64,000 bases of DNA from Selaginella moellendorffii. Lineage: Eukaryota > Plantae > Lycopodiophyta. Location of the stretch: positions 327,380 through 391,379 of the forward strand of contig NW_003314371.1 in the NCBI RefSeq assembly GCF_000143415.4, read 5' to 3'. The stretch's first letter is position 1; each line of letters opens with the position of its first letter. Below the pieces are notes generated by a model. That model was not told the DNA's origin and searched no databases. It was given only the letters and a program-made list of their open reading frames with translations. The position numbers and the translations under genes are program-made. Shown one piece after another: positions 27,601 through 42,339 of the stretch.

Positions 27601-28668
27601 TTAGAAGTAGAGGAAGCACAGGATCATGACACCGCCGACGAACAAGAGCAGCCGGGAGAGCAGCGTTTCCTGCTGGTCCGGGCGGAGCGGCGGCGGCAGG
27701 GCCCTCAGCTGGTGGTGGTGGTGGTGGTGGTAGCTGGCCGGCGGCGGCGGCGGCGTGTGCAAGCCTCCATACGGCAGCATGGCCGGCCCGGGTGGCGGCG
27801 CATCGGGGAAGCCATGGAACTGGAGCCGGAAGAGCGATGGAAACAATCCAAATCCCGCGGAGAAAGTCACGTTGCCGAATCGCGCCGACGCTCCCGGCCC
27901 CGCGGCAGCTCCAGCCACGAAACCAATGCCGTATGGATCGTAGAGGCGGCGGGCGTGGTGGTGCCAGGCCGCGAGGCTGGCCTGGTGGTGGGGGTCCGAG
28001 GAGGAGCCCGACCTCTGGCCGGGGGGCCGAGATGGGATCTCCATCTCGGGCACCGAGCTGGTGGCGTGGTCGCGGTGGTCGGAGGAGGACTCCACGCAGC
28101 CTCGGCCATAGAGGGGGATGACTTTGTCCTCGTGGACGGGGGCCTTGCAAACCGGGCACTCCTTGCAGATGGATCGCAGCTGCGTCCACTTGTAGAGGCA
28201 GGGCCAGCAGAAGAGGTGGCCGCAGAGGGTGACGACGGGATCTTGCGCGAGCTCCAGGCAGATGTTGCAGTCGAAGCTCCCGGCGGCTTGGTCGCGATCG
28301 TCGCCCTCGTCGTCCTCGTCGTCTCCATCGTCGCAATCGCGATCGCGGTCGAGGGTGGTGGAAGCTGTTTTGCTGCTGGCTGGAGGAGGAGGAGGAGGAG
28401 GCTTGGTTCTTGATCCACCCGAGGTTCCCGGATGATCGTCGAGGCCTGAGTGATCAGCTCTTACTTGGGCATTGCCTTGTGGATCTTCTTCTTCTTCTTC
28501 CTCGCGATCGTGTTCCACTTCGTCGTCTCGAGCGCGTAGCTCCGCCTGGGACTCACCTGGCTTTGGGCGATCGCGAAGCTCTCCCGATCGATTGGAGGAA
28601 GAACTGGAATTGGACACCGCAGTGCTGCTGCCGCTCGCGTCCTCTGCTCCGGCGGGACTGTTCGTCAT
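27601..28668 (-). CDS. RNF5/RMA-like C3HC4 RING E3 ligase with C-terminal membrane anchor, intronless
   Basis: FDCNICLELAQDPVVTLCGHLFCWPCLYKW...CPVCKA...VIPLYGRG, IPSRP and a hydrophobic C-terminus. Confidence 0.95.
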   Translation of the reverse strand: MTNSPAGAEDASGSSTAVSNSSSSSNRSGELRDRPKPGESQAELRARDDEVEHDREEEEEEDPQGNAQVRADHSGLDDHPGTSGGSRTKPPPPPPPASSKTASTTLDRDRDCDDGDDEDDEGDDRDQAAGSFDCNICLELAQDPVVTLCGHLFCWPCLYKWTQLRSICKECPVCKAPVHEDKVIPLYGRGCVESSSDHRDHATSSVPEMEIPSRPPGQRSGSSSDPHHQASLAAWHHHARRLYDPYGIGFVAGAAAGPGASARFGNVTFSAGFGLFPSLFRLQFHGFPDAPPPGPAMLPYGGLHTPPPPPASYHHHHHHQLRALPPPLRPDQQETLLSRLLLFVGGVMILCFLYF

Positions 28669-29019
28669 CGTCGCCCGCCGCCGCTACCATCGCTAGAGCT
28701 TCTCGTCCTCTTCCATCGCCACGGCATTCTATCCTTCTTTTTTCTTCTTCCTCGTAGATTTTTTTTTTCTTTGCCCCTTCAGCACAAACAGACGCATTTG
28801 ACTGGCACGTCAGCGCTTGACTTCGCGGCGGTTGACCGTGCAATACCGTTTATTTTGTCCAAATTACAGGCATTTCGAATATGCCCCTGGAGAGAGAGAA
28901 GGTAGCAATTAGGGTTCATGGTTCTCGCCCAGTGGCTCGCGATGGTGCTAGGTCGCGGGCCAGCGCCAAAGCGCCGATCGACCAGGTGATTCTGTGAAAG
29001 GTCGCGGCTTGGCAGGGCG

Positions 29020-32000
29020 ATGGCGTCGGCGGGCTTCGTCCTGGGCTGGAAGGGGGACGAGGACGAGGAGGTGGATATTGGCGGGTCGGATGAGGAAGCG
29101 CCAGGGATCGAGAGCGCAGGCGCTATTATTCCAGCAGGGGTCGAGAGCGCAGCCGCGAGGAGGATTCAAGCCGAAGATTTTGAAGCTGAGAGGAACAAGA
29201 GCGCGCCGAGTCCGTCGATATTTCGGGGAAATGAAAGGGAGCTCCCGCTTCCTCCTGGCGGTAAGCAGCGTCTCGAGAATCGTGCTCTTAATGGCGCTCC
29301 AAAGCTTGGAATGGAAGCTCAGGATAATCGAGGCTGCAAGAAGGAAGCTGGCGCTGCGAGGCGGGCAGAGAATGCTAATGGCACGGCTGCTTCGATCAAA
29401 GGCAAGGAGCCAGTGGTGGAAGAGGAAGACGAAACCATGGCATTTAAAAAGAGAAAGGTCGAATCTAGCAGCCTCCGGGATCTCAAACGCCGAAAAGACG
29501 GAGACTGGAGATCCAGCCAGTGGGTAGCTTGCGTGCTCTGCAAAAAGTGGCGAAGGTATGGCCAGAGTTTTAATTTCTTTTTCCATCTCCCTCGGCTGTA
29601 CCAAACTTCTTGTCGGCAGGATTCCATTCGAGCTGACTGTGGAGAGGAGTACGTGGCACTGCAAGGAAAACGTCTGGAATTCCTCCATTGCAAGTTGCGA
29701 ATGTCCACAGGTAGTTTGTTGTGCCTAAGATGTGATTAAATTCTATGATGTGCAGGAAGAGGCGAGCACCTTTGACAGCATGCCTACGATGCGGGTAGAT
29801 TTCCCAAACACATTATGCATATCGGATGGCGTTTTACGGAGAACCTCCACGCCTCTGGACAAGTCTGCTGCTCCTGTACCAGATGATATGACCGTCGCAA
29901 GCGAGACGATCATCGGGAGCGCTACTGATGCCACTGATAGGGCCGTCTCTCCTGCTGAAAACGGTGCCGCCGCTTTGGACGTTTCAAAGTCTGCTCTCAA
30001 GACGCTTATCCCTGAAGAAGGTGAAGCTGTAGCGAACCAAGATGTGAGCCCCTGTCAAGTCTGTGGTTTGGGCGGTCAAACCATGTAAGCTTGATAATTG
30101 ATTTCTATTCTCGCCTCTAACTTTCAGTTCTTGCAGCTCCTGCTCTCTAACAGGATGCGCGAGTAGATATCACTTTCACTGCTTGGTTCCTCCACTGACT
30201 TCTCGTCCTAGTGGAGGGTGGTATTGCAAGAATCACAAAGTTGAATCAATATGGCTCTCGAGTGCTGAATGCGGGAATGGTGGTCAGATGTATTACGTGA
30301 AGTGGAGAGGTCGTGCTCACCTTTATGATAGCGTGCTCAGTGAAGCCGTAGTAGCGAAGCTGGCATCGAAGAAGCTGACTCATCTAAAGAGGAATGGAAA
30401 GGTATTTGCTTGTTTTTTGGATGCTTCTAAAGTCTGACATGCAGCATTGCAGTTGCTAGAGTGGCAGCCGAGCTGGACAGTGCCAGAACGAGTCATAGGA
30501 ATGCGACAAAATGATTCGCAGGAGATAGAATGGCTTGTGAAATGGACTCAACTCGGTTACGAACAATCCACATGGGAGTCTGCCTCTGCAAGATTTTTAT
30601 TGGAGGAAAAAGGGCGGCTTTTGATCGATGTGTATGAGAAGTGGTGTGAAGTAGCGCGGCTGCGGGCTCGAGCTCCTCAGGCCGACAAGGTAACAATGTT
30701 TGCGTTCATACGAATGATAACATTTTCTCTTACAGGTTTCTGAAAAATGTGCGCGGCTTATAAAGCAACCTTCTTGGCTACAAAGTGTTTCTTTGCAAGA
30801 CCATCAGCTGGAAATGCTAAACAATCTTCGCGATTGCTGGTGTAAGCAGAAGGGAGGCATTGTCTTAAGTAATCCAATCCAGGTACATGGGCTATTTGTG
30901 TCCCGGCGTGATTAACTCGTTTTGCAGGAAGAACCAGTTCCGGTTGTAGCCTTCTCAATCTCTTTGTGTCGGGAATTCAGAACAAAGGAGCCCATACTGG
31001 TGGTGACTTCTCCAGAGATGCTGCCGTTTTGGGAGAAGAAGCTTAAAGAGTGGACACTTGATCTCAACGTAGTTATGTACTGTGGCACTCCTAATAGTAG
31101 GTACTTCATTCGACAGCATGAGTTCTCTCTGATCGAAGGCTGCGTCAAGCTACACATCGTGGTAACCACGTTGGATGTTGTGGGCTCGGTAAGCTTCCCC
31201 TTTTTATTTTTTAATAACCATTTTCATAATCAATGCAGGATGTGGATGTGGACTTTCTTAAAGGGTTTAAGTGGTCCTGTCTATTAATTCATGACTCTCG
31301 TCGAGCTCGGAGAAGTATATACGAAAATTTGGCGAAGGTGTCTTCCAGTTTTTGTTTGCTTTTCTGTCCAGAGCCTTGGAAGGTAGTGTTTGCGTTGTCT
31401 CATTGTGTATACTCATTATTTCTTATCGTTCTCTCAGTGGGATTCCGAAGAGCGTCAACTTATTGCGGAAGTTCTTGGAAAAGATAAAAGCGTTGACTGG
31501 AAGGAGCTTGTGGCCTGCCAGTACAATGCTGAACCTGTGAATGATCTAAGGGAATATTGGGTTCCGGCGCAAATGTCCCCTGTGCAGGTTCATCAGTATT
31601 GTTTGCTCATTGTAAAACACTTTGAGCTTCTGCGGTCAGGCAATATGTCTCAGGGGGATAATATTCTTCACGAACTTGTTTCTGTGCTTCGAGATGTAAG
31701 TTTTTTTATGTAGTTATCTTCTGATAATATTCTCCTGTTTCTAGAGCAGTGTTGTAGTCATCCTTATTTGGTCTCGGAAACTTTGGCAAAATCTGTCGGG
31801 GAGCTCGTTCCTCAGGAGGAGTGGCTTAATGCGGGGATAAGAGCGAGTGGCAAATTGGAGCTTATGCACAAGATGCTCTCGCACTTTTATCTGAACAAAA
31901 AGAAAACCCTTATCATTGTCCAGGTATCAAAAGTTCATCTGCTTGAGTATTGTTTCATAATTTATATATTTTCTTTTTCAGAACACACGTTCCAAACAGC

Positions 32001-35000
32001 TCATGAACATTATTGATGATTATCTAAAGCAACAATTTGGCTCATATGGACGCATTGAGCGAGGAATGGATGCACAGGTTCGTCAGGCATCTCTCACAAG
32101 GTTCAACTCGCAGGACTCTAGCTGTTTTGCACTTCTTCTCGAGCGCGGTGCTGCTACATCTATTCCAAATCAGCTCACGGCCGTCGACGCGGTTTTTATC
32201 TACGACAGCGACTGGAACCCATGGAGTGACACAACGTGCATCCGAAAGCTTGGTCTCAACAACGTGACCGTGTATAGACTGTACAGCGGCCTCACTGTGG
32301 AGGAAAAGATTCTTGATGGAGCACGGGAGGATGTGGTGTCAAACGAACGCCAACTTAAGAATTTGAGCTTGAAAGCAATGCAAGAGATGCTTCGTTGGGG
32401 TGCGGCGGCTCTACTACAGATGGACGACTGGTGTACACAAAATGATGCAGTCACGGATCCAAGGATAGGATGGAATGGTGGAACGGTCCCAAACGAGATT
32501 GGCAAACAACTGTTTTCTCTAGATGACGATGAAGTGAAGGCTGTTTCTCTTGGCAACCACGGAACACGTCTCAGCGACAAAGCTCGAGCGATTTTGTCAC
32601 ACAGAGATGCGTCGTCCAAAGGAGTTCCTCTTTATGGTGTATCGTCCAAGGCTTGTGAAGACGGAAATTCGACGGCGGCGGATGAGTTCTGGTCCCCGCT
32701 TCTCAAGGGTAAACGCGAAAAGTCGCTCCAGTTACAGGGACAAAGAACGCGAAAGCCAGTTGAATATCGAGATTTTGAAGACATATCAAAGAGAAAGAAA
32801 AGGAAACTTACGTCACCAAGTTACCTAGCGGCCCACGGCGGTAAGATAAGTGTTTTGATGCTTGGGCTAGAATCGTACTCTTTTGTTGTTTATTACAGAG
32901 CTACGGCAAGTGGATGCTTCTGATACAGTCCGTCCAACTCCTGATGCTTCACCCCAGGTAGCAGCACCTCCAGTTTCGCAAAGTTCTGGAGGTCGTGTAA
33001 CAACTTCGAGCAGCCAACGAGAGGAGCAGCTTGAGCGTCTCAGCAGTTTGCAGGGAGAGCTGAAGTCCCTGGGCGAGTTCATAGAGTTACCAGTAAGCAG
33101 TGCTTGGGCTTTAACTGTTTGCAGTTGTCTCACTCGACTTTCTTTCGTAGGAGAATGTACTAAAGCGCGCGTTGGAATTGCTCACTTTCGTGGTAAAGAA
33201 CCTGCGGATGAATAATAATTTCCGTCACGAGGTGCAGTTGTCCTTGGTATGTTCTATATCTAATATTCGTGTTTTTAGCTTCTGAAAGACTTATGCCTTC
33301 TTCTTGGCAGTGCTGGATTGCAGCAGAACAGATGGGCGTTGACTTCGACAAAGTGGTGGCGACTTTAGCGGCAACGAGCGAGGGGTTTGATGTGGACGAC
33401 CAGTCGCTGGAGGCTGTTCACAACAAGCTCAAGATAGCTTTGGGAGCCTTTCCTGCGTCTCGTTCACAAAACGGACAGTCTCCAACGGTAGCTGCCACGG
33501 AAAAAACCCAGCCAGCGGCTGTGTCACCACGGGCTTGTTTAGATTCTCCTCCCGGGGGATGTCGTGTATCGGTAGAAAAAAGGGACCTGTTGGAAGAAAA
33601 AAAGCAGGAACTGAAGACGAGGAGGAAAGCCCAGACTCAAAAGCTCCTGAACTCTCAAAAGCGAGTGTGGTGCGAGCTTATGGAGAACGAAACCAAGCAA
33701 AAGGTCCACCTTGAGAAGGTTTACGAAGCTGAATGCAGAACTATTCAAGCGTTGGGGACGGCTGAGAGTAGCCGGCTGCTAGCAGAGAAAGCCGAGGAAC
33801 ACAAGTTACGGGTGAAAGAACTTCAGACGCGGCTAGATAAGGAGAGAAGGGAATTGGGAGAGAGACAAACGTTCACGAGGAACAGGATGGGCGCGTTCTT
33901 TGCTGATCGGCTAAAGCAGCTGGACAACGGTGTTATGCCAATTGATATCACTCCGGCAACCGACAATACCGCTGAATTGCGGGAATATCAACCTGAAAGT
34001 TCCGCCAACCTTAGCCACCAGGAACAGCAACTTCCGCGAGAAAGCGATGATCTCGGGCGTGGAAATTCTCGTGGTGTCCGTCAACAGCAATCTCCATGTG
34101 AGCAGCAAGCAGATCCTCCCATGATCCAGAGTGAAGACACTCCTGCTCGACCGCGAGTTTCTTCCGTTTCTATGACCACTGCGGAAGCCTCGCATCCTGT
34201 GCTTCCTGAAGCCCCCGTTCCAGCTCCTGAAATTGGTTCTAGCACAAGAGAAGAAGTCTCCGTTCCTGCTATCAGAAGTAAAGTAACTCAAGTTCATGCG
34301 AGCAGAAACGAAGTTCCAGTTCCGAACGTTCCTGCGAGCAGAAGACAAGAAGTTCAACCTCCAAGCATTCCAGCGAGCAGGACAACTTCCATTGCTGCGA
34401 GCCGAAGAGAGGAAGTTCCGCTTACACGGGACGTTGCTATTGCTGCGAGCGGAAGAGAAGAAGTTCCACTTACACGGGATGTTTCTATTGCTGCGAGCGG
34501 AAGAGCAGAAGCTCCGGCTGTTCCGGCTCCTGCGAGCAGAAGGGAAGAAGTCCCTCTTCCTGCGAGAACAGTAGAGGAAGTTCCACTTGCAAGTGACGTC
34601 GTCCGACCGCCAGCCAGCAGAAGCCAAGTCCCACCCGAGATCCCAGCGAGCAGAAGCCAGCAAGGACCAGCGACCGGGAGCCGAGCCGCAGTTGTTATTG
34701 CGTTACCAGCGAGCAGAGGCCAGGAAGAATTTCCACGTACTACTAGTGGTCGGGCCAACGAAATCTTTGCAGGGAACAGAAGTCAAGTTGTCGTTGCGCT
34801 TCCTGCAACGGGTCAGATTCATGCTGAAGCTCCTCTTCCCCTTGGCCAGAGTCCGCGGGTTCCACAGCAGCCGGTTTCCAACTTTGTGCCGCCAGCGCGC
34901 CTGTCTTCGCACTACGATCCACTGTCGCTGGAGGAGACGAGGCTGCAGAAAGAGATGGAGAAGATCAAGAAGGCGCGCGACGACGAGGTTGGGTTCATCA

Positions 35001-35957
35001 GCCTTTCTTTGCTCAACTTCCTCGTATTTGAGTTCAGGTGGCAAGGCTTTCGAAAGAACTGGAGGCGTTGAAACGGAAGCTCGAGGACGAGTGCAAAGCG
35101 TTCGCCCAGAAGGCGGAAGCGTTACAAGGCAACCTTGCAGCGGTGGCTGCGCAACGCCGCTTATCCGAGGCGCTAAGGCTGAAAGACAGCGTGCGCCTCA
35201 AAGGTACTATGTCATTTCTCCCTGTTTCTTTACAGCCATGCGTGGTTTCTCAGGATCTCCCGGACCGCCAGCTCCGGCAAGCGTGTGGCACAACTCCGTC
35301 ATGGACTTCGCCGCCATCGCGGGCGCCAACTCGCGGCCGCAAGCTCTGGCCGGCTCCTCCTCTCCAATGGCCGCGATCTACAACACGCAGCATGGGATAC
35401 TCAGAGTCCCAGGGCAGCACTTTGGCCAGCAGCAGCATCCTCAGCAGGTGATGGTCTTCCCGCCGCCATCGCCAACCAACGCGACACGAGCTCCAGATCT
35501 CCTCCGGCCAATCTCTCCCAGCTTCGCCACCCCAGCAACGCAGCAGACGCATCACCATACGAGGCTCCAGTTCGTGCCAGTCTCAGCTTCTACGATGATG
35601 ATGACGAGTCCAGCAGTAGCACCGCCTTCTCCCACGGTGGTGGCCACGACTCAAGAGCTCATGAACGCCCGCGTCAGCTCGCAGGTAATGTACAGGAACA
35701 TAAGCGAGAACCTGCGGCTGTCCTGGTTGAACCAGGCTCACACAGGGACAGGCGGCGGCGGCGGTAGCTTTAGTAACACAGGAGTAGTACCAGCTGCCGC
35801 GGTCACTGACGTAGCTGTGGATCACGCGGCTCAAGCTAGCGCCAGTTCTGTAGCACGAGTTCTAGCCGGAGGCAACGCATTTATCGCCCAGCACCCTCTG
35901 GACTCCCGGGTGAGCTTGGGACACGCTGACTACATCTGCTTATCAGACGAGGAGTAG
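29020..35957 (+). CDS. MOM1: MOM1-like CHD3-derived silencing factor: CW finger, PHD, 2 chromodomains, degenerate SNF2, CMM2 coiled coil, C-terminal SIM
   Basis: PHD (CQVC...YHFHCLVPPL...WYC), chromodomains (YYVKWRG; EWLVKWTQLGYEQSTWE), SNF2 remnants (CCSHPYL, ASGKL, YDSDWNP, VYRLYS..TVEEKIL), CMM2-like DPLSLEETRLQKEME, and terminal ICLSDEE like the MOM1 VCLSDD SIM. Confidence 0.85.
34240..34800 (+). repeat. Degenerate ASR/REEVP coding repeats in the MOM1 disordered region, including a near-perfect 48-bp duplication
   Basis: IAASRREEVPLTRDVA IAASGREEVPLTRDVS IAASGR, plus many PASR units. Confidence 0.8.
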
Positions 35958-36132: not shown

Positions 36133-38982
36133 CTAGCTGTCGTCTCCAGTGATCATGGCGTCTGCGTCCCTGTTTGCTGCAGCCATGGCTTCTACGTCGA
36201 CAAACTCGGTTGGATCTTGCTGTGCTACTCCTGCTGCTGATGATGGTGGCGATGAGGCATGCTGACTCCAAGCTGCCTGTTCTTGCGGTGTTTGTTCTTG
36301 TTGTCCGGCTTGGACAGCGCCTTGCTGGTTCCAGGAAGCGGGAGCGTGAGCGTGAGCTTCCCACGGTGCTGGAATGGGACGAGTTGCCGGAGGGAGGAGC
36401 TCCATGTACGAAGGCATTGCTGGATCGGCCGCTAGAGAGCCACTGCCGTTGAGAACTCTGGGACTGGACAGGGAGCCGCTCTTGCTGTACACGAGCTCCG
36501 TCCTGCCGGCGGAGTAGATGGCGGACGTCGTAGTTTCCGGGAGTCTCAGCTCGATTCCAAAGCCGCCGCCGCCGCCACCGCTGCCTCCGCCATCTTGCTC
36601 CATCCCGCCAGGCGAGCCGTTTTCGTAGCACCCCTGTGGCAGCTCGGCAACGCCGACGCCACCACCTTCAAATGCGTCCTTTTTCTGCCTCTTCCACCGC
36701 TTGGTCGACGAAGTACCGTCGTCCTCAAAGTCCTCTTCGCTCCTCTCCGTGTGGAGGTAGAGCCAGAGCTTCCTCTCGCCGTCGTAGCGTACGCACGGAT
36801 CTCTCTCGTAGTGAAGCCTGTCCAAGGCACCACTCACCACCTGGTGAACTTGAGCCTCGGAAACGTCCTCGACAACGAACTGTGAGTCCCGGATCAAGGC
36901 ACACACGTCCGCCCGTGTCCCCACGCCACCAGGAAGCCGAGCAGCAGCGTCCCTCACCAGGCACAGAATCGTGACGTGCGGAGGCCGGTCCGGCTTGAGC
37001 ATGGAATGGTCCCTGGCTTTGGAGTTCGGCTTTCCCCCGCCTCTTCTCAAAGGAGCCACCACCGACTTTTGCCCGTCCGAGCGCGTGTAAGCAAACGCCC
37101 GGTCTGGTACCGAGTAGCGAAGTATTTCCTCCTTCCGGAAGTAGGACCTCATGTCTTCCGAGCTCGGCGCGATGGTTATCAGACTCTTCTGCGCTCGCAT
37201 GTCCCTGAATCTCTCCCTCTCGTCCACGGCCGCCGAGGCAACCGGAGGCGGCGGAAGTTGCAACTGGACCATTTGCTGCCGAGTTTCTTCGCCGTGCTTG
37301 TACCACGTCGCAAACGCTTCTTCCAGCTTCGAAAGGATCTTGGACGGTACACCCCAGTCGTCCGCCAGCATGTTGCCAGACTCGTCCACAGATCCCTGGG
37401 GGCCGATCCAGTACCAAGACTTCGACTCCTTCTCGTAAGTCGTGAGCGGCTTCCACCCCTTGGCTCCAGCAGGAGCAATCTTGGATGATAGGACTTTCAA
37501 TGCTCCCCACGCTAAGTCTTGCAGTGGCTCCTGAGCCTGGAGGACTTTTCGATCCCCTGGATTTTCCTGCACTCTGCTGACAACCTCCGAGAAGGGAACG
37601 CAGAAAAAACCAGCTTTTGCTGCGCCATCGTCACTGCCGTTGTCATCAGTCGGACTCGACGGGCCACTGCTGGCATTCTTTGATAACGCTGCGTCAACGT
37701 TGGGGCCACTGTCCTTGGCCGGCGTCAGCAAAGCTCGCCTCAGAGCCGACAGGAACAAGATGATCGAAAATGGGAAGGTGACTCCCAGTTTCTTGATAAC
37801 CTTCGACTGTGGTGGAGATTCCGAAACCTCTTTCTCAGCCGCCACCTTTTTCTTCGTCTTCTTCTTCTGCTCTGCCTCCTCGTTCCCTGGCTCGGCCTTC
37901 GCCACTCCAACGTCCACAAGAGCTTGCATTCTCTGCTTTCCCGCACTGGAAGCCTTCTTGTCACTATCTTCCGAGCTCGTCATACTCTCATCCTCCCTGG
38001 TCCGCTTGGCCACCGAAGCCCTCTCCACATTCGACTTCCTCTTCTTCTCGCCACTCGTCAGCGAGGAGCTTGTATTCCCGCCACCACCACCACCACTGTC
38101 ATTTCCAAAGGCCTCCGGATCATCCGAGACTGGAGACGCCGCGTTCTCAGCCTTCCCAGGAACAGACTTCTTCACAACACCACCTTTGGAGGCAGCTCTC
38201 CCAGCCTTTGCTAAGCCCGGCTTAGCTACAGCTCCCTTCGCTACCATCCTCGTGTTTCCATGCACAGCTTCAGCCACTGGCTCGGCAGCCTTGCTCTTCA
38301 ACGCATCCTTCACTGTCTCGGGCATCTTCGCCTTCTGGACAGCCTTGAAAGTCTTCTCAGCCACCTTTGGGAGCTGCGGCTTCACCTTGGTGTCCTTCCA
38401 CTTCCTCCAAATCTCTAGCCTCCCCTCGATCTCCACGTCCGGATACTCCTCCCACAGCTTTTGCATCTCCACGAACGAGCTCACCATGGAATTGTGGTAC
38501 TTTCTCAGCAGCTGGTAGTGCTCTTTCCTCTGGAGACACTTAATCCCGTCCGAGTACTGCACCACATTGGGCTGGCAATGTCCTCCTTTCAAGCTCTCGA
38601 ACAACTGGGCCATTGGATTCCCGAAGAAGATATTGCTAGTGCCCGAGAGAAGCTCCTTGAGCGTCGTCGCAAATGCCTCCTGGTCGATCTCCGGGGGCAT
38701 GAAAGCCATGAGCTGCTCCCTCTCCTCCTCGGACAAGTAGAAATTCCAAGTCTCCAGGGACAAAATGTTCTTCAAGTCGGGAAGATCGAACAGCTCGAAC
38801 GGGAAGCTGGCGATGGATTCCCCGACCTGGCAAGTCTCCATACCCTTGTCCGAGAGCTCCGATTCCGTAGAAACCTCCGAATCCTCGAGCTTCACCGCCA
38901 GCATTCTCCGGGGCGCAGTGGCGCCGGCATCGCTCGACGATCTAGCACCGCCAGCCCTGTGATTGTTGGCGAGAATCGCCAT
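36133..38982 (-). CDS. NFRKB: NFRKB-like INO80 complex subunit (DEUBAD plus winged helix), intronless, 949 aa
   Basis: ILSLETWNFYLSEEEREQLMAFMP...IFFGNP, FRKEEILRYSVPDRAF, KARDHSMLKPDRPPHVTILCLVRDAAARLPGGVGTRAD and SGALDRLHYERDPCV. Confidence 0.92.
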   Translation of the reverse strand: MAILANNHRAGGARSSSDAGATAPRRMLAVKLEDSEVSTESELSDKGMETCQVGESIASFPFELFDLPDLKNILSLETWNFYLSEEEREQLMAFMPPEIDQEAFATTLKELLSGTSNIFFGNPMAQLFESLKGGHCQPNVVQYSDGIKCLQRKEHYQLLRKYHNSMVSSFVEMQKLWEEYPDVEIEGRLEIWRKWKDTKVKPQLPKVAEKTFKAVQKAKMPETVKDALKSKAAEPVAEAVHGNTRMVAKGAVAKPGLAKAGRAASKGGVVKKSVPGKAENAASPVSDDPEAFGNDSGGGGGGNTSSSLTSGEKKRKSNVERASVAKRTREDESMTSSEDSDKKASSAGKQRMQALVDVGVAKAEPGNEEAEQKKKTKKKVAAEKEVSESPPQSKVIKKLGVTFPFSIILFLSALRRALLTPAKDSGPNVDAALSKNASSGPSSPTDDNGSDDGAAKAGFFCVPFSEVVSRVQENPGDRKVLQAQEPLQDLAWGALKVLSSKIAPAGAKGWKPLTTYEKESKSWYWIGPQGSVDESGNMLADDWGVPSKILSKLEEAFATWYKHGEETRQQMVQLQLPPPPVASAAVDERERFRDMRAQKSLITIAPSSEDMRSYFRKEEILRYSVPDRAFAYTRSDGQKSVVAPLRRGGGKPNSKARDHSMLKPDRPPHVTILCLVRDAAARLPGGVGTRADVCALIRDSQFVVEDVSEAQVHQVVSGALDRLHYERDPCVRYDGERKLWLYLHTERSEEDFEDDGTSSTKRWKRQKKDAFEGGGVGVAELPQGCYENGSPGGMEQDGGGSGGGGGGFGIELRLPETTTSAIYSAGRTELVYSKSGSLSSPRVLNGSGSLAADPAMPSYMELLPPATRPIPAPWEAHAHAPASWNQQGAVQAGQQEQTPQEQAAWSQHASSPPSSAAGVAQQDPTEFVDVEAMAAANRDADAMITGDDS

Positions 38983-39180
38983 TTTCTCTACATCTACCTG
39001 AGCTCCACTCGCCTCCTCGATTTCTCCACTGGAGCCCTAGCTCCTAACGAACCGGGTTAGGGCTTGAGCGCCCAAAGGAATGATGACGTGGCGCTCGCCA
39101 GGCCGTTGGATCGGCCACTCCTTCTCCCTCCTCCCGGAAAGATCTTCCGCGAATGGTGCAAGCCTTCTTCCTCCTCCCGG

Positions 39181-40797
39181 ATGATTAGAACAGAGTCCAA
39201 GAGAAAGAGGAAGCTCGCCAGCGGCGCTGCCAGCAATCTCGAGTGGATTCTCGCCGTAAACGCGAATCGACAGCCCGATCTCGACACCGCTAGCTGCGCC
39301 GACCTCATCGCGGCCTGTGGAGCGGCCAGAGATCTCAATCGCGGCAAGCGCATCCGCGATTCCATCATCCAGAGGAGCCCAGCGCTGCGAGAATGCGCCT
39401 ACCTCTCTACCCGCCTGATCGAGATGTTTGGGCAGTGCGAGAGCGTGGAGGACGCGCGCAGGGCTTTCGACTCCATGGCTGGCCGGGACAAATACTCGTG
39501 GAACGCGCTCCTTCAGGCATATGCCCGGAATGGGCATCTGGAGAGCGCCAAGAATCTCTTCGACCGGATGCCACACAGGGATATTTACACATGGACGGCG
39601 ATGATGAACGCATCCGCGCAATCCGGACAGTTCCAGCTATCCACATTTCTTTTCAACCAGATGCCGTCTAGGGACATCGTTCCATGGACGGTGTTTATCA
39701 CTGCACTTGCCAAGACCGGGGATATTCCTAAAGCTGGGGAATTACACCAAAAGATGCCCCAATGGAGCATTTTCTCTTCCACGGCGCTAATCTCTGCATA
39801 CACGGAGAAGGGTTACGTTTCCCAAGCTAGAGAAATTTTTGATACTATGCCATACAAGACCGTCGTAACATGGAACGCTATGGTAACAGCCTATGCCGCA
39901 AACCGGCATATTGTTGACGCCAAGTGGGTGTTTGACAGTGCCACGGAGAGGAACGTAGTGACGTGGACTGTCCTCGTGGCGGGACTTGCGGAGTTTGGCC
40001 ATGCTGACGAGGCTGCCGGGATGCTGGAAAAAATGCCACGTAGAGACACCGTGACTTGGAATGCCGTGATGGCAGCATTTGCCCGTCAAGGGCATTTGGA
40101 TCAAGCACAGAAACTATTTGAAAAGATGCCCGAGAAGAACACTGTGTCTTACAATGAGGTTCTGGCAGCATTGATCGAGCAAAACCGGATGGACGAGGCC
40201 AAGAGATTTCTCGAGAGGATCCCAGATCCAGACGTGATCTCATGGACGACGCTGCTAGCAGGATTTGCCCGTTTGGGGCATCTGGGCGAAGCTCAAGCTC
40301 TCTTCGATCGGATGCCGCTACAAAACGTGGTTTCGTGGACTACCATGGTCGCGGCCTATGCCAGAAACGATCGCGCAAGCGACGCAGTGGAGATCTTCCA
40401 GTCTATGGATCTGGAAGGGATCAAACACGACGAGGTAACGTTCTTGGACATCCTCACGGCGTGCGCGCATCTCGGCCTCGTCGATCATACCCGGTTCTTC
40501 TTCCTGTCAATGTGCCAGAACCGAGGCATCGATCCGCTGCTCCACCACTACCTCTGCGTTGTGGACGCTCTCTCTCGCGCCGGGAGGCTGGGAGAGGCCG
40601 AGGAGCTTCTCTGGAGCATGCCTTTCGAGCCCGAGACCGAGGCGTGGACGACACTGCTGGGAGCTTGCCGGATCCACGGCGACGCCGATCGTGGAGCTCG
40701 GATCGGGCTTCTGATCCTCGAGCTCAATCGCGATCGAGAAGCCCATCGAGGAGCACCTTACATGCTCCTGTTTGGAATCCATGCCGAGGGAACGTAA
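39181..40797 (+). CDS. PLS-class PPR protein ending in an E domain (no DYW)
   Basis: Tandem ~31-aa motifs, then HYLCVVDALSRAGRLGEAE and WTTLLGACRIHGD. Confidence 0.93.
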   Translation: MIRTESKRKRKLASGAASNLEWILAVNANRQPDLDTASCADLIAACGAARDLNRGKRIRDSIIQRSPALRECAYLSTRLIEMFGQCESVEDARRAFDSMAGRDKYSWNALLQAYARNGHLESAKNLFDRMPHRDIYTWTAMMNASAQSGQFQLSTFLFNQMPSRDIVPWTVFITALAKTGDIPKAGELHQKMPQWSIFSSTALISAYTEKGYVSQAREIFDTMPYKTVVTWNAMVTAYAANRHIVDAKWVFDSATERNVVTWTVLVAGLAEFGHADEAAGMLEKMPRRDTVTWNAVMAAFARQGHLDQAQKLFEKMPEKNTVSYNEVLAALIEQNRMDEAKRFLERIPDPDVISWTTLLAGFARLGHLGEAQALFDRMPLQNVVSWTTMVAAYARNDRASDAVEIFQSMDLEGIKHDEVTFLDILTACAHLGLVDHTRFFFLSMCQNRGIDPLLHHYLCVVDALSRAGRLGEAEELLWSMPFEPETEAWTTLLGACRIHGDADRGARIGLLILELNRDREAHRGAPYMLLFGIHAEGT

Positions 40798-40806
40798 CCC
40801 GGATCA

Positions 40807-42339
40807 TCAAAAGGTGGCGGTCTTGGTTCCTCCATAGATGTTGGAGAGAAGAACATAGCTTGGAGCACAGCCAGGATCCAGCGCCAGTATGATTGTCTCA
40901 ATCCTTGCCGCGCGCTTGGAGTCCCGGTGGATCTTGCAACCCGCTAGGAGCGTCGTCCAGGTGATGATCTGGGGGACGAAGGGCATGGAGTTGACGAGCT
41001 CCTCAGCAGCGTCCATTCTCCCAGCACGCCCAAGAACGTCGATCACGCAGTGGTAGTGCTCCAGGATTGGGGTCACGCCGCGGTCCAGGATCATCCACAG
41101 GAACTGCTGGACGCTCTCCTTGACGAGCCCCGTGTGGCTATGCGCCGTGAGGACGCTCACGTATGTGATCTCGTTGGGCCGCGACGATCCATCCTGCTCC
41201 ATGACCTTGAAGAGATCGAGAGCTGCAAGGAACTCGCCGCTCTGGACGTATGCCGCCAGCATCGCGTTCCAGGAGATAACGTTACGATCCGGCATGGAAT
41301 CGAAGAGCTTCCGAGCTTGCAGCAAATGCCCCTTTTGAGCATACGCTGCAAAGATCGCGGTCCAGGAGACCACATTGCGATCTCGCATTGTATCAAAGAG
41401 GTTCTTAGCCTGTTCCAAGTTTTGGGTGTTGACATAGAGCTGGATCATGGAATTCACAGCTTGGAGGTCCTGTTCCGGCATTTCAAGAAAGAGGTTTTGT
41501 GCTTGTAGCCAATGCCCACACTGGGCAAATGCGGTGACCATAATTGTCCAAGCTATCACAGTTCTTCCCGGCATGGCATCGAAAATTCGCTTAGACTCCT
41601 CTACTCTCCTGTGCTGCGCATGGATCTGGAGGAGCGCCGTCCAGGAGATCGAATTCCTCTCGCCCATGATCTCAAACAGCGCTCGCGCCTCGCCAAGATG
41701 CCCATTTTGGGCAAATCCCACCATCATCGTCGTCCACGACGCCCCATCCTGATAAGGCATTCGCTCAAACACCGCCACAGCCTCTAGGGTTCTTCCAGTG
41801 CCCATGAATGCCGCGCACAGCGCGTTCCACGACACGAGATTCCGGCGCTCCATGCTCGCGAAGAGGCGGCGCGATTCCCCCAGGCGGCCGCGCTGGGCAT
41901 TGGCCGTGATGAGCGAGTTCCACGACACCAGATCCCTGTCGGGCGAGCTCTCCAGCATCTCGTGCGCGCGATCGAGGTCGCCGTTGATCGCGTAGGCGTG
42001 CGTGATGATGTTCCAGGAGAATCGATTGGGCGCCGCGATGCCGTCGAACACCATGCGCGCCTCGTCCACGCTGCCGCACCGGCTGTACATCTCGATGAGG
42101 AGATTCGCGAGGTAGCGATTGGCGTGGTGCTCGCCCTGCCGGATCCGCGCGTGGAGCTTCCGCCCCTCGGCGATGTCCTTGGCCCTGCCGCAGATCTTGA
42201 CAAGCTCCGCCAGGGACTGCACGATTCTCCCCATTGCTCGCCATGCTCCCCAAGAACACCAAACGAATCTGGGCCGTCTATTCTCAAGAACACCGCGAAT
42301 CCGAGCCGTCCATTTTGAAAGGAAGGGGCCGAGCACCAT
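40807..42339 (-). CDS. PLS-class PPR protein ending in an E domain (no DYW)
   Basis: Tandem PPR motifs, HYHCVIDVLGRAG, WTTLLAGCKIH and YVLLSNIY. Confidence 0.93.
   Translation of the reverse strand: MVLGPFLSKWTARIRGVLENRRPRFVWCSWGAWRAMGRIVQSLAELVKICGRAKDIAEGRKLHARIRQGEHHANRYLANLLIEMYSRCGSVDEARMVFDGIAAPNRFSWNIITHAYAINGDLDRAHEMLESSPDRDLVSWNSLITANAQRGRLGESRRLFASMERRNLVSWNALCAAFMGTGRTLEAVAVFERMPYQDGASWTTMMVGFAQNGHLGEARALFEIMGERNSISWTALLQIHAQHRRVEESKRIFDAMPGRTVIAWTIMVTAFAQCGHWLQAQNLFLEMPEQDLQAVNSMIQLYVNTQNLEQAKNLFDTMRDRNVVSWTAIFAAYAQKGHLLQARKLFDSMPDRNVISWNAMLAAYVQSGEFLAALDLFKVMEQDGSSRPNEITYVSVLTAHSHTGLVKESVQQFLWMILDRGVTPILEHYHCVIDVLGRAGRMDAAEELVNSMPFVPQIITWTTLLAGCKIHRDSKRAARIETIILALDPGCAPSYVLLSNIYGGTKTATF

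Follow-up and report, generated by a model that had tools for sequence, protein, structure and literature searches.

The MOM1 orthologue of the lycophyte Selaginella moellendorffii carries a CW-type zinc finger that is real, complete and far above a chance match. The gene occupies positions 29020-35957 of the forward strand (+), about 7 kb, of the 64,000-nucleotide (nt) stretch of contig NW_003314371.1 that we analysed (positions 327,380 to 391,379 of the contig; hereafter the window, in whose numbering all coordinates are given), and its mRNA encodes the finger constitutively. Among the relatives sampled here, the finger appears to be a lycophyte-restricted feature of MOM1, present in both of the lycophyte orders represented. 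Our preferred reading, to which we give a probability of roughly 0.6, is that this lycophyte finger would read the histone H3 tail as one member of a multivalent reader array on a motor-dead scaffold, with CMM2 carrying out the recruitment of silencing partners.

The finger is encoded by 29518-29555 and 29620-29761 (+) after removal of a 64-nt and a 45-nt intron. Its 5' part (29518-29555) is the last 38 nt of exon 1, coding QWVACVLCKKWR, and the 3' end of that exon reads TGG GTA GCT TGC GTG CTC TGC AAA AAG TGG CGA AG, followed by gt in phase 2. Exon 1 itself (29020-29555) runs from the ATG at 29020 and holds residues 1-178 and two nucleotides of codon 179. Intron 1 (29556-29619; 64 nt, GT..AG, phase 2) interrupts the finger after profile position 13, and exon 2 (29620-29710; 91 nt) begins with the G that completes Arg179 and continues with 30 codons, IPFELTVERSTWHCKENVWNSSIASCECPQ, which form the second part. 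After intron 2 (29711-29755; 45 nt, GT..AG, phase 0), exon 3 (29756-30084) opens with GAA GAG, the two glutamates that end the finger. A preliminary description made from the sequence alone had placed a spliced CW peptide at 29521-29762, and direct reading of the + strand reproduced that peptide exactly.

Exon-wise Pfam searches matched the final 13 residues of exon 1 to positions 1-13 of the zf-CW profile (PF07496) with 10.2 bits, and residues 8-30 of exon 2 to positions 23-45 of the 47 in the profile with 21.4 bits (E = 2.5e-4). These two matches are colinear, and the sum of their scores exceeds the gathering cut-off of 27.5 bits. In the full-length protein XP_024520221.1 the match spans the entire profile (positions 1-47 of 47) at residues 167-211 with 36.1 bits (E = 6.5e-9), so that the domain assignment also holds for the spliced protein; the N-terminal 365 residues searched alone gave 41.7 bits. 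The four zinc ligands (C171, C174, C193 and C205) and the three tryptophans (W168, W177 and W191) of a CW finger are all present and aligned with those of the MORC3 CW. A sequence search of the PDB with residues 155-225 identified the CW fingers of MORC3 (E = 2.5e-6) and ASHH2 (E = 9e-5) as the nearest solved structures; the same type of search with only the 30 residues of exon 2 returned no match.

We used assembled public RNA data to examine how the exons are joined. Runs holding 70% of the 31-mers of 28900-31300, which is the share expected of spliced RNA, were chosen, and Logan contigs from four such runs, each of a different study (X1, X2, X7 and X8), were aligned to 28700-34600. One contig per run begins at 28969 (28924 in X2) and crosses both CW introns with exactly 64 and 45 nt removed. 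The later GT..AG introns are also removed in the long contigs of X1 (5435 nt) and X7 (3720 nt) and in two contigs of X2, the shorter X8 contigs carry most of the same joints, and the X1 contig extends to the long exon after 33310. Because single contigs span them, the CW exons are physically linked to the exons for the PHD finger, the tandem chromodomains, the SNF2 region and the MOM1 domain, which settles in its favour the earlier claim that the CW and PHD exons belong to one transcript. The alternative in which the CW exons represent a separate upstream transcript, a gene-model artefact or a chance match has practically no probability left: contigs in all four studies run unbroken from 28969 through the CW exons and onward with every intron GT..AG, and a chance match is contradicted by the Pfam E value of 6.5e-9.

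No joint that skips exon 2 was seen in the contigs of the four runs, although rare isoforms lie beyond contig resolution. Since the 91 nt of exon 2 are not a multiple of three, skipping it would shift the frame, and any productive mRNA must therefore encode the finger.

Identification of the gene as the S. moellendorffii MOM1 orthologue draws on homology searches, domain content and phylogeny. The top match of an exhaustive HMMER search with exon 11 (31982-32839) was XP_024520221.1, which is 2045 residues long and 100% identical to the query at residues 815-1100, exactly where translation from the ATG at 29020 through the splicing seen in the contigs would place it. This RefSeq entry, titled 'uncharacterized protein LOC9662892 [Selaginella moellendorffii]', has the same sequence as the product of the gene and contains the joined CW sequence SSQWVACVLCKKWRRIPFELTVERSTWHCKENVWNSSIASCECPQEEASTF. 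The allele of the other haplotype, XP_024529348.1 / EFJ29853.1, is UniProt D8RCH6 'MOMa' (a shorter model bears the name 'CHR15b'), and the sequence of the finger is the same in both haplotypes. Searches of a word-indexed protein collection were uninformative: the 600-residue exon had no match, the whole protein matched generic CHD proteins only and the CW region matched only itself, which reflects the limit of a word index and not an absence of relatives.

Pfam analysis of XP_024520221.1 placed a PHD finger at residues 309-350 (24.9 bits; 23.1 bits for exon 4 alone), a chromodomain at residues 417-452 (45.1 bits; 37.8 bits in the exon-wise search, within 30447-30740), a Helicase_C domain at residues 791-895 (24.9 bits) and the MOM1-like domain (CMM1, PF25029) at residues 1142-1261 with 67.5 bits (cut-off 27); PF25029 was also matched exon-wise within the long exon from 33269. 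The first chromodomain is weak in Pfam (18.4 bits for exon 4 alone). A local jackhmmer search recovered the CMM2 region (residues 1726-1810) in 131 fetched relatives with E values from 1e-22 to 1e-31, among them the RefSeq entries named 'helicase protein MOM1' from Diospyros, Pisum and Striga. The last 40 residues (tail ...DYICLSDEE), used as a CMM3 probe among the fetched relatives, matched only the Selaginella alleles. A tree of the ATPase region, built by maximum likelihood from 88 rows, places the protein inside the MOM clade (71 rows; stem length 0.86) with 100% support in the Shimodaira-Hasegawa-like approximate likelihood ratio test. The sister group of this clade is the CMM-less PKR1-like group, a placement that agrees with a 2022 CHD survey (PMC9113485). 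At its base the MOM clade has no resolved branching order, and long-branch attraction was flagged by the program for the join of Selaginella with a liverwort. The gene was described earlier as SmMOM1 (Caikovski et al. 2008, PMC2507757), and the assignment to MOM1 made in the preliminary description thus agrees with the PF25029 score, the presence of CMM2, the tree and the literature.

The remaining exons follow in the same order as the domains. Behind the finger, exon 3 encodes a low-complexity linker and, from about 30053, the N-terminal portion of the PHD finger (CQVCGLGGQT). The PHD finger is completed in exon 4 (30137-30401), where it ends at about 30227 and is followed by chromodomain 1 (about 30240-30353); chromodomain 2 (about 30477-30584) lies in exon 5 (30453-30689). 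The joints of both exons are present in the contigs. Exons 6-11 (30736-32840) encode a degenerate SNF2-type ATPase region, with the Helicase_C lobe in exon 11 (31982-32840) and every joint found in contigs. CMM1 is encoded across exons 12-14 (33021-33502) and the CMM2-like coiled-coil region by 34895-35199, interrupted by an intron at 34988-35037 whose junction matches XP_024520221.1. The last exon (35254-35957) ends ...ADYICLSDEE, with the stop codon TAG at 35955-35957. All of these features are on the + strand.

The RNA-derived contigs also show several differences from the window. X2 shows two alternative 3' splice sites in 31696-31749, which set the exon start at either 31745 or 31750, a difference of 5 nt; use of the upstream site would shift the frame. 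A GAA is inserted after 34309 in all four runs, and about 30 single-nucleotide polymorphisms relative to the window occur between 29327 and 34469 in a pattern that varies from run to run. The insertion and the polymorphisms fit the second S. moellendorffii haplotype, whose allele has 2046 residues as against 2045 here.

We aligned ten sequences, including fish CHD4 and one PKR1-like protein, to examine the state of the motor. The CHD4 motifs LADEMGLGKT, DEAH and RAHRIGQ correspond to VLSNPIQEEP, IHDS and RKLGL in Selaginella MOM1, which has none of the signatures of an active SNF2/CHD3 enzyme (Walker A GxGKT, Walker B DExH and the motif VI arginines). The SNF2-rel_dom match in Pfam is likewise partial (residues 509-645, profile positions 1-137, 31.7 bits). 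Walker A GLGKT is missing from every aligned MOM-clade protein that has an N-lobe, and the motif VI arginines are missing from all of them. At motif II (window about 31290-31301), IHDS occurs in Selaginella alone, whereas the other aligned MOM proteins retain DEC or DEG despite having no Walker A. Given these degenerate catalytic motifs, Selaginella MOM1 is best seen as a scaffold for reader domains and not as a remodeller.

This architecture combines familiar and additional elements. Members of the MOM1 family (Arabidopsis MOM1/CHR15, poplar PtMOM1 and rice OsMOM1), which form the MOM clade of CHD subfamily II, have in common CMM1, CMM2 and an SNF2 region without the Walker A GKT, and the PtMOM1-type members share a PHD finger and tandem chromodomains with Selaginella MOM1. 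The Selaginella protein differs from them in the extra CW upstream of the PHD finger and in the loss of the motif II DE as well. PKR1-like proteins of CHD subfamily II have the same core of PHD finger, tandem chromodomains and SNF2 region, and some have an N-terminal PWWP, but unlike MOM proteins they retain GLGKT and DE(A/G)H and are missing CMM1 and CMM2; no CW was found in their scanned N-termini.

To survey the distribution of the finger, we scanned with Pfam up to 450 residues preceding the exon-11 match in the 63 closest long relatives and in XP_024520221.1. PHD fingers and chromodomains were each found in 51 of these 64 N-termini, PWWP in two and zf-CW in two, namely those of Selaginella and of the clubmoss Diphasiastrum complanatum (KAJ7544078.1). 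A strict CW pattern applied to all fetched proteins likewise retrieved only the Selaginella alleles and KAJ7544078.1, and a phmmer search of the fetched set with the Selaginella CW gave nothing else below an E value of 0.2. Neither the liverwort proteins (Marchantia MpSNF1.4 and Riccia) nor any of the angiosperm MOM representatives scanned has a CW. The fern (Adiantum) and gymnosperm (Taxus) models also have none, but both start inside the ATPase and are uninformative about N-termini. It had been suggested beforehand that other MOM1 proteins have no CW; this describes nearly all of the N-termini scanned, but the finger is not unique to Selaginella, as the Diphasiastrum MOM has both a CW and a PWWP.

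The Diphasiastrum protein (2330 residues, unnamed) resembles Selaginella MOM1 in its acidic N-terminal motif, its CW, the order of PHD finger, chromodomains and SNF2 region, and its position in the MOM clade. Pfam places its CW at 694-737, PWWP at 796-882 and PHD finger at 1214-1257, followed by chromo, SNF2 and Helicase_C domains; the model stops where the MOM1 domain begins. It differs from Selaginella in having about 690 residues before the CW, a PWWP after it and a gene of 104 kb as against 7 kb. No PWWP is present in Selaginella MOM1 within the 97 residues that separate the CW from the PHD finger. The two CW fingers (Selaginella, WRSSQWVACVLCKKWRRIPF...TWHCKENVW...ASCECPQ; Diphasiastrum, WKSSQWVECISCKKWRRIPF...NWQCKDNIW...ASCDAPQ) have the same spacing and share 28 invariant positions that include every cysteine and tryptophan, whereas their flanks are unalignable. 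N-terminal PWWP domains were also observed in PKR1-like proteins of the sister clade (P0148, 48-142; P0159, 240-350).

The finger might be a functionless, neutral relic of a domain that lycophytes acquired long ago by insertion. That the adjacent PWWP of Diphasiastrum has been lost in Selaginella would fit such decay, as would the dispensability of the N-terminal region of Arabidopsis MOM1 (PMC2507757). However, all four zinc ligands and all three tryptophans are intact, 28 positions are invariant across two lycophyte orders between flanks that cannot be aligned, the two Selaginella haplotypes encode the same finger and skipping of exon 2 would cause a frameshift, and we regard a relic as very improbable. 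The preferred reading instead supposes that the last ancestor shared by the lycophytes already had the CW and that selection would have retained it since then. Its distribution is more simply read as a gain on the lycophyte stem than as an older origin followed by losses.

Two further observations concern the family's early history. The acidic N-terminal motif of Selaginella MOM1, GWKGDEDEEVDIGGSDEE, lies in exon 1 (window 29038-29091, residues 7-24), and its pattern, GW(K/R/Q)G(S)DEDE-V-[IV]D-SD(D/E), is common to the Selaginella, Diphasiastrum and liverwort proteins and to one transcriptome-derived MOM; it was not found in any seed-plant MOM among the fetched proteins. The liverwort proteins Marchantia MpSNF1.4 (BFI03805.1, 3394 residues) and one from Riccia fluitans belong to the MOM clade and possess CMM1 as well as CMM2, indicating that the MOM family is older than vascular plants. 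The 2008 paper put the origin of the family at vascular plants (PMC2507757), and a single liverwort transcript was included in the 2022 survey (PMC9113485).

What might the finger do? In MORC3 the methyl-lysine is held in a cage of W410 and W419, and binding is abolished by mutating them (PMC10612106), and MORC2 does not bind histone H3 trimethylated at lysine 4 (H3K4me3) because its floor tryptophan is replaced by Thr496, although the right wall Trp505 is retained (PMC5811534). In the alignment from the PDB search, W168 (floor) and W177 (wall) of Selaginella MOM1 align with MORC3 W410 and W419, and both tryptophans are present in Diphasiastrum too. The CW fingers of animal MORC3 and Arabidopsis ASHH2/SDG8, which are readers of methylated H3K4 (H3K4me) in a subgroup that also includes MORC4 and ZCWPW1/2, thus have the same four cysteines and the same floor and wall tryptophans as the Selaginella finger (PMC10612106, PMC5811534), but they sit in different hosts, a GHKL ATPase (MORC3) and a SET methyltransferase (ASHH2), rather than in a motor-dead CHD-type scaffold. 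Because the nearest solved fingers are H3K4me binders and the floor and wall tryptophans are kept, reading of the H3 tail with a preference for methylated K4 is plausible and would be the most likely function. The finger would then bind the H3 N-terminal tail, probably at methylated K4, through a W168/W177 cage as in MORC3 and ASHH2, and together with the PHD finger and the chromodomains it would form a multivalent reader array that places the motor-dead MOM1 scaffold on chromatin. A CMM2 dimer would then recruit the partners in silencing that have been described in Arabidopsis, PIAL and MORC6. Silencing through CMM2, PIAL and MORC6 is established in Arabidopsis only, according to Caikovski et al. 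(PMC2507757) and a more recent preprint (bioRxiv 10.1101/2023.01.10.523455). The preliminary description had further proposed that the array could direct silencing to H3K4me-marked or intermediate chromatin through a MORC partner that has no CW, a speculative step that can be inferred only from the two conserved cage tryptophans.

Several points weigh against this reading. The comparison of cages covers the floor and wall tryptophans and not the third wall, the contacts with H3 A1 and R2 or the preference for methylation state. The AlphaFold2 model of the CW region, built from a three-row alignment, is poor (predicted local distance difference test score, pLDDT, of 52), and of the CW fold, a two-stranded antiparallel sheet around one zinc, only the expected beta-hairpin (QWVAC / WRRIP) was predicted. 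Other CW fingers make intramolecular contacts, that of MORC2 lying against the ATPase module and that of MORC3 autoinhibiting the ATPase (PMC5811534). The entire N-terminal part of Arabidopsis MOM1 is dispensable for silencing (PMC2507757), and the reader array may therefore be unneeded for core silencing. Finally, the lycophyte sample consists of two species and, with the base of the MOM clade unresolved, gain of the finger in lycophytes and its loss elsewhere are indistinguishable.

Alternatively, the finger may be real and conserved but structural or regulatory, packing on the chromodomains or on the lobes of the dead SNF2 motor, or binding DNA or unmodified H3, in the manner of MORC2. By analogy with MORC2 or with MORC3 autoinhibition, an intramolecular regulatory role is a serious rival, and we give this family of explanations a minor but substantial share of the probability. 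The MORC2 and MORC3 contacts just mentioned demonstrate that roles other than reading exist for CW fingers, and the linker following the finger differs between Selaginella and Diphasiastrum, such that there is no obvious conservation of the C-terminal element with which some CW fingers close their cage. Nevertheless, the wall tryptophan is present here, as is the floor tryptophan, whose loss accounts for the failure of MORC2 to bind, and the nearest solved sequences are those of H3K4me-binding fingers.

A bolder extension of H3-tail reading, which we consider improbable, would make the CW (with the PWWP in clubmosses) the module that first targeted an early MOM to chromatin. Such a module might read H3K4me, with or without methylated H3 lysine 36, as ZCWPW1 does, and might supply the CW-less MORC proteins of plants in trans with the reading ability that animal MORC3 and MORC4 hold in cis, in which case MOM-MORC silencing in lycophytes would be aimed at active or bivalent chromatin and not at DNA-methylated heterochromatin. 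The animal dual readers ZCWPW1 and ZCWPW2 have the same order of CW and then PWWP as the Diphasiastrum protein, but this likeness extends to domain order only, and Selaginella MOM1 is without a PWWP.

Full-text literature searches found no paper linking MOM1 with a CW domain or zf-CW, and a PWWP survey that included Selaginella makes no mention of a CW in MOM1. Published descriptions of the MOM1 family list PHD finger, chromodomains, ATPase and CMMs only (PMC2507757, PMC9113485). The 'N-terminal homology region' of Caikovski et al. (2008) is unlikely to correspond to the CW, as none of the angiosperm N-termini scanned has one. The architecture had been thought undescribed, which is true of the papers we could find but not of public databases, where the RefSeq model and a precomputed Pfam list already hold PF07496.

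Upstream of the gene lies an open reading frame for a RING-finger protein (27601-28668, - strand) and downstream a long open reading frame (36133-38982, -), so that the MOM1 gene is tightly flanked. Two intronless open reading frames resembling pentatricopeptide repeat genes are located further downstream (39064-40797, +, and 40807-42339, -).

The CW finger of lycophyte MOM1 is thus expressed, kept across the lycophyte split and undescribed in searchable papers, and represents the accretion of a domain on a known family. The practical gain is modest, because the finger is already annotated automatically in public records and the N-terminus of the Arabidopsis protein is dispensable. To our knowledge, no recognisable reader domain is left in Arabidopsis MOM1. 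A lycophyte MOM1 with a CW, a PHD finger and two chromodomains on a motor-dead scaffold would offer a natural intermediate for biochemical study of how MOM1 is targeted. With CW and PWWP in lycophytes and PWWP in PKR1-like sisters, the MOM lineage appears to have gained or lost reader modules lineage by lineage.

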